The position numbers and the translations under genes are program-made. A stretch of 64,000 nucleotides of DNA, from contig OZ281495.1 of the NCBI GenBank assembly GCA_965637545.1, positions 23,126,001-23,190,000 of the forward strand, read 5' to 3'. Shown here piece by piece: positions 8,126 to 27,172 of the stretch. The DNA is from Phallusia mammillata. Its lineage: Eukaryota. Numbering within the stretch: position 1 is the stretch's first letter; the number at the start of each line of letters is the position of its first letter. Under the pieces are notes generated by a model, which did no database searches, was not told where the DNA came from, and saw only the letters and a list, made by a program, of their open reading frames with translations.

Positions 8126-11100
8126 ATGGGTGAATACTTCGGTGTCGTGGACTTCGTTGTCTTTGGAGGTAACATGTAAAAATTTGTTTTTCATATTGGT
8201 TAAGTTTCAGAATCTTGGTAATCCAATAAATGATTCTACCGCACATTTAATAATAATCCACAGGATTTGGTTGGCCCATGATATTTTTAACATAAAAAAC
8301 ATATTTCGTTGTTTGTTTATGTTTTTGCATATTATATTCAACAGGGAGTTTGCTCTTGTCCGTAGTGATTGGAGTTTACTTCGCTTTTAAAGATCGCAAA
8401 AAGGGCAACGTCGAAGAATACCATTATGGAGGAAAACGAATTTCATCGGTAGGCTATAACATAATTTTCAACTCAATGCTTCCAGCCAATACAAACTAAA
8501 CCGGGTCCTATTTTTTATAAAGGTCGCAATTGGAATTTCAATAGCTATTACGTACATATCGGCTGTCACCGTGCTTGCATTTCCAACTGAGAGTTACTTG
8601 TATGGCATTGTTTACATCTGGTACAGCTTCGCAACTATAGGTGGTACGTTCATCACTTGCATGTACTACATTCCGCTTTTCCTTAGACTGCAACTCACGA
8701 CTCTCTATCAGGTACTGCTTTGTTGAGAAAAACTATTTTTATACTTTTATATATTAGTTAACGGTCGTAAATACTTTTCAGTACTTGGAGATGCGATTTC
8801 ACCCTGCCCTAAGAAAAGTCGTGTCAGCATGTGCAATATTGTTGTATGTAAGTTATTTTCCTTAAATTTTTGCTGTAAGTTTTGTCCTCTTCAACCCAAG
8901 CGAAAATCATAGCGATCTGAATGAGGCGCCAAGACCAACGTTATGTATAAGTTATATGTTTTTCTGCCAAAAATAAAATAATGTTTTCTGCTGCTGTTTC
9001 CATTCAGTTAATCTACATGAGTTTTGCTGTCTACATTCCTGCTTTATCGTTGAACGCGGTCACTCCTATCAATTTGCACATGAGCATATTGCTTTCCACA
9101 GGAATCTGCACTATTTACACGACAATGGTATGAAATTTTTATTCTTTGTACTCTTAGGAACTAATACCCAATAAACTGTGATCAACGCATGATAATTATA
9201 ACTATATAATAACCAACGTGTGCGCATTTATTATTGTATTTTTTGTAAACGCGAAAAGACACATGACTTTAAGCAAGCCTATGTTGTAAGATCTCGTATT
9301 GTGAGAAATGAAATAATATAAAAACCTTCAAGATGCTATACTTAGTATCGCATAACGTGCTGTAAATCCTTTGTTAACCCTGTTCGATTAAACAACCGCT
9401 AACTTTTTCAGGGTGGTTTAAAAGCAGTTATTTGGACAGATGTAATTCAGTTTGCCATCATGTTTATTGGAGCTATATCAGCACTCGTTAAAGCTACAAT
9501 TGACGTTGGGGGCATCCAAACCACTTGGGACGCCTTGGAAAGAAGTGGAAGACTTAACCTTTTTCAGTAATTAATTTGACTTTACTTCATTTGCTGTGTA
9601 TGTTTACTATATATTTTAGAGCAGATTTAAACCCGACTATTCGCAACACAATATGGACAACTCTTGTTGGAGGTGGCATCTACGAATGTTTCAATATTTG
9701 CGTCAACCAGTCGGTTTGTCAGCGGTTCCTCTCCTGCAAGTCTGTTAAAGATGCTAGAATGTAAGTACATAAGCAGCTGTTTGTTTGTTTAATCAACAAT
9801 ATAACAAATTAATACCCGATTGCCTTGAAATGAGTGTAAAACATTCAACCATACAAATAGGTAAAACCAAATAGCACACCCGTCCTATAGTTTTTATTTG
9901 TGGTACTGTATCCATGTATATGCACGGGATCCTTACCAAAAATCGCACAAAAATATTCTGCAGCAGATCTTTAAATTTTATACATTTTAAACTACCAAAT
10001 TCGAAGTCATTAAGTTGGGTTTGAAGCAGGTTTTCATTTACCCTGGTATCGTTCTAAAGGCTTTTACCAAAAAAAAAAAAACATTCAGCACTTTTGGCTA
10101 TCAGAAAATAGGCTATCAGAAAATACCATGCATTACCTCTATCGTGGAATTAAAACTTATCTATCATTGATAACAATTGTTTCTGCAAACAGAGCATCGG
10201 TTATTGCCATGGTTCCGAAAATGATTCTTGGTTCGGTCGCTACACTAAGTGGATGTGTAGCATACGCTTACTTTGAAGGATGTGATCCAATGGAATCGGG
10301 TTTGATATCAAAGAAGGATCAAATGTTTCCATACCTTGTACTAAAAGTGTTTCGCTTTTTCCCTGGAATGGCTGGTTTATTCGTTGCAGTTTCATTCAGC
10401 GGCACTATGAGGTTCGATTCCTACAACGCACTGTTGAAACTAACGAATAAACAACTGTTCATTTCAGTACTGTTTCATCGGGACTAAACGCTTTGAGCAT
10501 TCAAATTCTTGAGGATTTCGTAATGCCCTTCCGACCTCGTCTTAATAACAAAACCAAACTTGTTTTCAGCAAGGCACTAGGTACTGGTCCATTCGTGTCT
10601 TGGTGTGGTTGTCACAGTCATGGCTTACGTAACGTCTTTTCTCGATGCTACGGTCATGTCAGTTTTGACCCCACTGAAGGGGGCGTTGAGTGGAGCAATA
10701 TTAGGAGTTTACACTCTTGGCATTTTTTTACCGTGGTGCAACACAAAGGTACCTGTTTAGGTGGTTGTGTTCTTTTTTGTGTTATTTAATTTGCACTAAG
10801 AGACATGGTGTTGTAAGGGTGCCATAGCAGGACAGTTGATAGGAACTGCAGTGTCCATGTGGATTGCTGTTGGTGGAATATTTTATCCCAAGTCGCCCAA
10901 AATGGATCGTTTGCTTCCCGTTTCCACGCGTCTATGCAACTTAACAAGCAATCAACTTAGAATTGAAAATTTCACGACTGTTGGTACAACTTTGGAATTT
11001 TCATCAATTAGGTAGGAAAGCGCTTGAAGCATGTTTTTGTGTTTTTGGTAATTTATATTGAAAAGATTTTTGTACACTGCGACGTAGCATGGACGACATC

Positions 11101-11624
11101 GATACCGAATCCAGCTCAATATACGCGGTTTCTATGTGGTACACATGTGGAATTGGATGCCTTACGACTGTTGTTACAGGAATGATTTTTTCGTTTTTGA
11201 CTGGTAAGTACCCAAGATGAATCGTAAGTGCTTTGTTGTTTTCCTAAAGCTTTTTATTTGTCATTTAGTGCACCTAAAAATGCTGAATGTAGTGCACGTA
11301 TTGAGTAACAGTTATAGTTTTGTACTTCATTTGCGTTTCATTTAATATACTTACCTCTTTTATGGATAACATAGTAAGATGCTGTTGGATTATGGTTTGT
11401 GTTTGTTTTTAGGTCGAAGCAATCCTGCAAATGCCGACCCGAGGTTATTTTGTCCTATTTTTGATAATCCCAGATTGCCAAAGAATGTCAGGACGTTTTT
11501 TCGCTTTGGTGTGCCATTAATGGAAGACGAAAAACCCTATCCAGGCAGTTATTCTTTGAGAAAAGTCAAACGTCCAATATCTAATAAGGACGATGATGTA
11601 AATGAATCATGTCTTGGACGATAA
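8126..11624 (+). CDS. SLC5A5/6/8/12-like sodium:solute symporter, copy 1 (frameshift or abnormal 37-nt intron at 10581)
   Basis: Exons encode [64 protein letters not shown] and C-terminal [14 protein letters not shown] 8126, stop 11624. Confidence 0.9.
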
Positions 11625-27100: not shown

Positions 27101-27172
27101 AATTCTGAATCACTGACCCCCAAAAACAGCAATATCACCAGCGCCGAAGTGTTGTTTAGTTTCGTTTGACAT
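24117..27172 (-). CDS. SLC5A5/6/8/12-like symporter, copy 4 (13 exons, intact, one GC-AG intron)
   Basis: Exons traced in phase from MSNETKQHFGAGD to ...EAQITKQ*; donor AG/GCAAGA at 25084. Confidence 0.92.

Follow-up and report, generated by a model that had tools for sequence, protein, structure and literature searches.

Acidic, basic, and histidine residues at predicted substrate-pocket and gate positions in a tandem array of SMCT-like SLC5 genes from the tunicate Phallusia mammillata

Introduction

The branch of the SLC5 family that contains NIS, SMCT, and SMVT is known for transporting anions in largely uncharged pockets. Here we analyze a 64,000-nucleotide stretch of DNA from Phallusia mammillata (contig OZ281495.1, positions 23,126,001 to 23,190,000 of the forward strand), hereafter called the window, which consists of AT-rich eukaryotic DNA with short introns. 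Four SLC5 genes lie at positions 8126–27172 of the window in alternating orientation (A on the plus strand, B on the minus strand, C on the plus strand, and D on the minus strand). A preliminary description of this DNA, based on a by-eye alignment to human NIS, had proposed that charged residues remodel the predicted substrate pocket in all four paralogs. Our comparison with described relatives points to predicted sodium-coupled carriers whose sequences differ from those of their solved relatives at substrate-contact and inner-gate positions.

Published structures define these positions in several members of the family. In NIS (SLC5A5; 7UUY, 7UV0), the iodide/perrhenate site is formed by Q72, V76, M90, Q94, W255, V293, L413, and F417, which are conserved from fish to human; W255 contacts both iodide and perrhenate, and the residues coordinating sodium at the Na1 site include S416 and F417. 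In SMVT (SLC5A6; 26va-26ve), the biotin site is lined by V83, M266, M267, L270, L424, A427, I428, and F431, and the ligand is hydrogen-bonded by Q80, Y99, Y106, and Q301. The intracellular gate of SMVT consists of F79, Y156, L270, and F431, and its substrate carboxylate is held by backbone contacts from S81 and A84 together with Y156. In CHT1, W254 of transmembrane helix 6 (TM6) cages choline, while in SMCT1 the side chain of Q263 hydrogen-bonds butyrate. SMCT1 and SMCT2 (7SL9) are the best-scoring solved relatives of the closest tunicate homolog of the array proteins.

Family placement

Gene models were built by hand: in-frame GT/GC..AG junctions were enumerated and scored against full-length relatives and the other paralogs. 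The outer limits given in the preliminary description proved exact, with gene A starting at 8126 and gene D starting at 27172 on the minus strand. Genes B (12234..16823, minus strand; 614 amino acids), C (19636..23406, plus strand; 615 amino acids), and D (24117..27172, minus strand; 621 amino acids) are intact SMCT-like SLC5 genes of 13 exons each; gene A (8126..11624, plus strand) is an SMCT-like SLC5 gene of 12 exons in which intron 9 is absent.

The models of genes C and D also rest on exon hits to the Pfam SSF domain (PF00474). With an E threshold of 0.01, six individual exons returned no Pfam match; the SSF hits came from a second scan, with a looser threshold and mostly different exons, in which gene C exon 6 (30.1 bits) and gene D exon 3 (24.2 bits) exceeded the cut-off of 22.8 bits and gene C exon 3 (21.8 bits) fell just under it. 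Searched against the PDB, a profile of exon 8 matched NIS (E 7.5e-15) and SMCT1 (E 4.8e-12) as well as SMVT, and BLASTP returned alignments with an E value of 0 over ~590 residues to relatives that bear PF00474. Searches of two very large collections gave, as nearest proteins, tunicate "SMCT-like" sequences of Clavelina, Ciona, and Styela, with 42–50% identity over the full length. No match above 66% identity to the array proteins was found in the protein collections searched, from which these proteins themselves are therefore absent. A literature search returned nothing on the function of tunicate SMCT-like genes.

The preliminary description had suggested a multiple sequence alignment and phylogeny as a check. 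We aligned the four proteins with 136, and later 156, relatives using MAFFT. In the resulting maximum-likelihood tree, A–D are monophyletic (support 100, stem length 0.52) and fall inside a nine-member clade (support 99) together with sequences of Clavelina lepadiformis (P0153), Ciona intestinalis (P0163 and P0164), and Ciona savignyi (P0165) and a Logan transcript (P0159). This clade in turn is nested in an expansion of 38 members, all from tunicates (support 100). A–D fall outside the vertebrate SMCT1/2 clade (support 99), whose relation to the tunicate-only clade is an unresolved polytomy. Because A–D are monophyletic, the residues that they share reflect one ancestral history rather than four parallel changes. 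The array genes thus belong, as judged from their predicted proteins, to a group of SMCT-like (SLC5A8/12-type) carriers that is an expansion confined to tunicates. NIS is therefore an unsuitable reference for them, and several of the changes listed earlier exist only relative to NIS.

Residues specific to the array

Positions were placed by alignment to published structures. For NIS, we combined a PDB alignment of macaque SMCT1 (P0207) with rat NIS and the MAFFT alignment; NIS numbers equal SMCT1 numbers plus 2 up to approximately residue 408 and plus 3 beyond, and SMVT numbers equal SMCT1 numbers plus 14. SMCT1 numbering is used below unless NIS or SMVT is named.

All of the residues read by eye in the preliminary description were recovered from the gene models (in the order A/B/C/D): NIS F67 is Tyr in each protein, Q72 is T/T/T/G, G93-Q94 is AT/AP/TS/AS, and W255 is E/H/E/D, with an Asn at NIS position 258, three residues after W255, in every copy. 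A Pro-Lys pair (VPK or FPK) occupies NIS 288–289 throughout, and K/K/K/R (LKG, IKG, LKG, LRG) occupies NIS M420, three residues past F417. The Na2-site Ser-Thr (NIS S353-T354; SMVT S365) is retained as (G/A)TMST in all four. Reference to all four paralogs nevertheless goes too far, as gene A is frameshifted and three genes are intact.

A scan of membrane positions identified exactly five at which charge is enriched in the cluster and rare in relatives, namely 135, 253, 287, 407, and 417. At position 253 (NIS W255), placed by alignment, gene A encodes Glu (GAA, 9684..9686, plus strand), gene B His (CAC, 14146–14148, minus strand), gene C Glu (GAA, 21708–21710, plus strand), and gene D Asp (GAT, 25950–25952, minus strand). 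Position 407 (SMCT1 G407, approximately NIS G409, at the start of TM11), which the preliminary description had missed, is Asp in gene C (22551..22553, plus strand) and gene A (10644–10646), His in gene B (13077–13079), and Glu in gene D (24968–24970). The series D/H/D/E at 407 mirrors E/H/E/D at 253, and gene B carries His at both.

None of the 156 relatives has Asp, Glu, or His at 253, and only two of them have Asn at 256, indicating that the pattern is beyond chance. Across the paralogs, 253 is limited to E, D, and H and 407 to D, E, and H despite protein identities of only 55–66%, a level at which synonymous sites must be saturated. A word search based on the exon-7 alignment for exon fragments from other species with the acid...Asn arrangement produced no candidate. 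By sequence comparison, the array-specific features are three only: the acid or His at 253, Asn256, and the acid or His at 407. On the stem of the array, the predicted proteins gained an acid (His in gene B) in place of the conserved TM7 tryptophan at 253, an Asn at 256, and an acid (again His in gene B) at 407.

The remaining charged positions are older. Glu135, Pro286-Lys287, and Arg/Lys417 together form a signature of the nine-member clade (support 99) that includes the Clavelina and Ciona sequences; it reads E, PK, and K/R in genes B, C, and D, and A, PK, and K in gene A. The Lys of the Pro-Lys pair (SMCT1 L287, NIS L289, SMVT Q301) is encoded at 22059..22061 (plus strand) in gene C, 10218–10220 in gene A, 13565–13567 in gene B, and 25601–25603 in gene D. 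Position 417 (SMCT1 F417, NIS M420, SMVT F431) is Lys in genes C (22584..22586, plus strand), A (10677–10679), and B (13044–13046), and Arg in gene D (24935–24937). Glu135, also overlooked earlier, replaces SMCT1 F135 seven residues before Y142 in the same helix and is encoded at 20269..20271 (plus strand) in gene C, 15975–15977 in gene B, and 26524–26526 in gene D; gene A, the sole copy without it, has Ala (8833–8835). The Pro-Lys and Lys/Arg residues, which had been presented as gains of this cluster, are consequently shared with the Clavelina and Ciona relatives, where they occur with Glu135, which may be their partner in a salt bridge.

These nearest relatives (44–50% identity) resemble the array in Glu135, in Pro286-Lys287, in Arg417, and in having Val or Ile at the position of SMCT1 Q263. 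Unlike the array, they lack both Asn256 and an acid at 407, and their residue at 253 is Q, Q, G, F, or R. Other differences from NIS lose their apparent significance in the wider alignment. Thr at NIS Q72 is the commonest state among relatives, and SMCT1 itself has T70; Phe or Tyr at NIS M90 is likewise the usual state, with F88 in SMCT1; and NIS positions 93–94 vary widely (T91-Y92 in SMCT1), so the array residues there, previously taken as unusual, are within the range of the family.

Across the tunicate expansion as a whole, pocket positions are the most diversified, with an entropy of 2.48 bits compared to 1.57 bits in non-tunicate sequences (background 1.70 and 1.46 bits, respectively), although this contrast is exaggerated because the non-tunicate set is rich in vertebrate SMCT1 orthologs. 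S67, T70, and Y142 are fixed across the expansion. These values suggest a family-wide diversification of predicted specificity of which the array is one instance.

Position of the changed residues in the pocket

The array proteins align with SMCT1 over the full length without gaps in helices, and they share with it the Thr at the start of TM1b (T70, genes A–C), an aromatic residue at 88, Y142, and the Na2 residues S351-T352. They differ from SMCT1 in W253 (E/H/E/D), I256 (Asn), L287 (Lys), F417 (Lys or Arg), F135 (Glu, or Ala in gene A), and G407 (D/H/D/E), as well as in F65, which is Tyr, and in the butyrate-bonding Q263, which is Val in all four. Among the pocket residues F65, T70, W253, and Q263 of SMCT1, only T70 is kept, and only in genes A–C.

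Comparison with NIS reveals a common fold and family, the Na2 residues S353-T354, and Y144. In contrast, five of the eight iodide-site residues (Q72, M90, Q94, W255, and F417) are replaced in every array gene. M90 becomes Y/Y/F/Y, Q94 becomes T/P/S/S, V293 becomes G/G/T/D, and F417 becomes T/T/L/V; V76 and L413 are each retained in gene D only. The predicted array pocket is not an iodide-type hydrophobic pocket.

Because 417 lies three or four residues from the equivalents of NIS S416 and F417, which coordinate Na1, the basic residues could also be viewed as a cation-site substitution. Lys or Arg is known to stand in for sodium in Na+-independent carriers of the LeuT fold, and here Lys/Arg at 287 and 417, near the NIS Na1 site (Q72, S416, and F417), would replace one sodium ion, altering the stoichiometry but not the substrate. 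In the array, however, the canonical Na2 Ser-Thr is intact, as is the Asp of the WTD motif, and the acids at 253 and 407 are left unexplained. We regard a cation-site substitution as quite unlikely.

The closest correspondence is with SMVT. In the alignment, 253, 256, 287, and 417 correspond to SMVT M267, L270, Q301, and F431, so that the remodeled sites coincide with contact and gate residues of that carrier. Of the hydrophobic SMVT residues, M267 gives way to an acid or His, L270 to Asn, and F431 to Lys/Arg; the polar Q301 gives way to Lys, and the gate quartet F/Y/L/F becomes Y/Y/N/K(R). The SMVT TM10 residues 424, 427, and 428 align exactly with NIS L413, S416, and F417, which supports the register. 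S81, a small residue at position 84, and Y156 of SMVT are all kept; within the array, conservation covers S67, T70 (Gly in gene D), Y142, S351, and T352. SMVT-type carboxylate anchors (a Ser, a small residue, and a Tyr) are thus retained in all four proteins.

The same alignment bears on the main alternative, in which the gate and its salt bridges were remodeled while the substrate is still a monocarboxylate. In such an arrangement, Tyr65, Tyr142, Asn256, and Lys/Arg417 would replace the hydrophobic gate, Glu135 would pair with Lys/Arg417, the acid at 253 would pair with Lys287, and the charges would tune gating or kinetics. The SMVT gate quartet, which aligns exactly with Y, Y, N, and K/R, favors this arrangement, as do the retained carboxylate anchor, the roughly balanced counts of acids and bases, and the joint occurrence of Glu135, Lys287, and Arg/Lys417 in eight sequences of one clade. 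That co-occurrence nevertheless represents a single phylogenetic event and is not evidence of coupling, and relatives combine K287 and R417 with a non-acidic residue at 253 (Q, G, F, or R), which indicates that no acid partner is needed there. Moreover, in NIS, SMVT, and CHT1 the residue at 253 is itself a direct substrate contact, and the charge at 407 has no obvious partner. Both the unchanged substrate class and the specific pairings appear doubtful to us.

In the reading that we prefer, the array proteins would remain Na+-coupled carriers of a carboxylate-bearing solute. As the changed sites are substrate-contact and inner-gate positions, the substrate is predicted to be more polar or more charged than butyrate, lactate, biotin, or iodide. 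On balance, we think it probable, with modest confidence, that the array encodes SMCT-like Na+-coupled carriers with a changed, more polar or charged substrate.

Several observations weigh against this reading. The positions map to substrate contacts or the inner gate of NIS, SMVT, and CHT1, in agreement with the pocket location proposed in the preliminary description, but they do so by alignment to published structures only. The equivalence of K287 with SMVT Q301 assumes an ungapped helix, and an alternative HMMER alignment shifts it by one residue. The acids at 135 and 253 and the bases at 287 and 417 could merely neutralize each other. The Pro-Lys and Arg/Lys residues occur in relatives that have no acid at 253 and hence are not tied to it. 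The exaggerated entropy contrast noted above belongs here as well, and RNA-like contigs fell on gene A only, in a comparison that covered this gene plus the 3' half of gene B.

Gene A

Where the paralogs have intron 9 (61–71 nucleotides), gene A has no intron and contains one extra base (10579..10581, plus strand; ...GCACTAG/G/TACTGG...). This produces a +1 frameshift at ~10580 that offsets the frames "...FSKAL" and "VLVHSCLG..." by one base. Read in the ancestral frame, the product is 613 amino acids (with X at the break), whereas the literal messenger RNA has an open reading frame of 486 amino acids that ends at a stop codon at 10958–10960, before two further exon junctions. Approximately 106 codons of this literal frame follow the shift and are out of the ancestral frame, and the lysine of LKG is as a result out of frame in the literal messenger. 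The exons past the frameshift are still open and conserved.

An independent DNA contig (run X3, 10387–10760) has the same sequence and shows no indel at 10580. An RNA-like contig (run X8) runs continuously over 10474–10749, which is nearly exactly the fused exon of gene A, and a second RNA-like contig (run X9) contains a joint from 8447 to 8522 that corresponds to intron 2. The RNA-like contigs, together with the confirmation of the frameshift in independent DNA, indicate that gene A is transcribed and is most likely a recent pseudogene.

Two introns that might restore the frame were considered and rejected. A 37-nucleotide GT..AG mini-intron at 10581–10617 would cut ~11 residues of TM11 and is contradicted by the unbroken RNA-like contig, and an 82-nucleotide intron would delete the helix. 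Inspection of the sequence at the frameshift revealed no recognized slippery site.

Two further observations concern intron 8 of this gene, which is 56 nucleotides long. The X9 contig is unspliced across it at 10395–10556, which may reflect intron retention, pre-mRNA, or DNA in the library. In addition, two independent DNA samples contain an 8-nucleotide insertion (TAGTCTGT) at window position 10447, within intron 8, that is missing from the window. The samples also differ frequently from the window at single bases across the stretch, suggesting that the species is highly polymorphic.

Array layout and relics

Genes B, C, and D have open frames throughout, identical intron phases, and GT-AG or GC-AG splice sites. 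The two GC-AG introns, gene B intron 10 (donor 12975) and gene D intron 9 (donor 25085), have a good GCAAG donor context, and the paralogs have GT-AG introns of the same phase at these sites.

A decayed relic of a fifth SLC5 copy (28366..28669, plus strand) covers the exon 10–11 region and contains in-frame stop codons. A second fragment with in-frame stops, possibly derived from exon 6, is found at 33076–33138 (plus strand). Both are remains of further array copies.

Gene B intron 7 contains a high-copy repeat (window 13700–14100) at which summed contig depth reaches 500–3300, compared to ~10–50 in the flanks, and at which many joints and loose contig ends accumulate; it is probably a transposable element.

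The relic at 28.4–28.7 kb, with its stop codons, and gene A, which is frameshifted and lacks Glu135, raise the question of whether the unusual residues arose because constraint was relaxed as redundant copies began to turn into pseudogenes. Against such decay, B, C, and D retain full frames over 13 exons with canonical splice sites despite protein identities of 55–66%, the Na2 site is preserved, as are most family-invariant motifs, and the unusual positions stay within one chemical class. We judge decay to be highly improbable as the source of these residues. Taken as predicted from sequence, the region comprises SMCT-like (SLC5A8/12-type) sodium:solute symporter genes arranged as a lineage-specific tandem array, with B, C, and D intact and A frameshifted.

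Discussion

The arrangement of charge in the predicted pocket invites a more specific proposal than a generally more polar substrate. With a Lys/Arg pair at its base and an acid pair nearer the outside, the pocket would suit a zwitterion, for instance a compound resembling an amino acid. The class named in the preliminary description, a zwitterion or an oxyanion, is likewise purely inferential. The stronger form of this proposal, in which the acids at 253 and 407 (both His in gene B) above a Lys/Arg floor bind a substrate class new to the NIS/SMCT/SMVT branch, is in our view unlikely. The candidate substrates under that proposal, either a zwitterion resembling an amino acid or a species that is cationic or metal-bound, carry a similarly low likelihood. 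If true, the four paralogs would represent a new type of tunicate transporter in variants that differ in specificity.

In the broader reading that we prefer, of SMCT-like carriers with an altered substrate, the paralogs keep the Na+ site and the carboxylate anchor while exchanging the contacting tryptophan for an acid or His and placing Lys/Arg and Asn at gate positions that SMVT fills with hydrophobic residues, and thereby provide a natural experiment on changes of specificity within this fold. The residues described here also offer concrete targets for de-orphanizing the large SMCT-like expansion of tunicates. Diversification of the pocket around fixed Na+ and carboxylate elements may be of interest more broadly than for these four genes.

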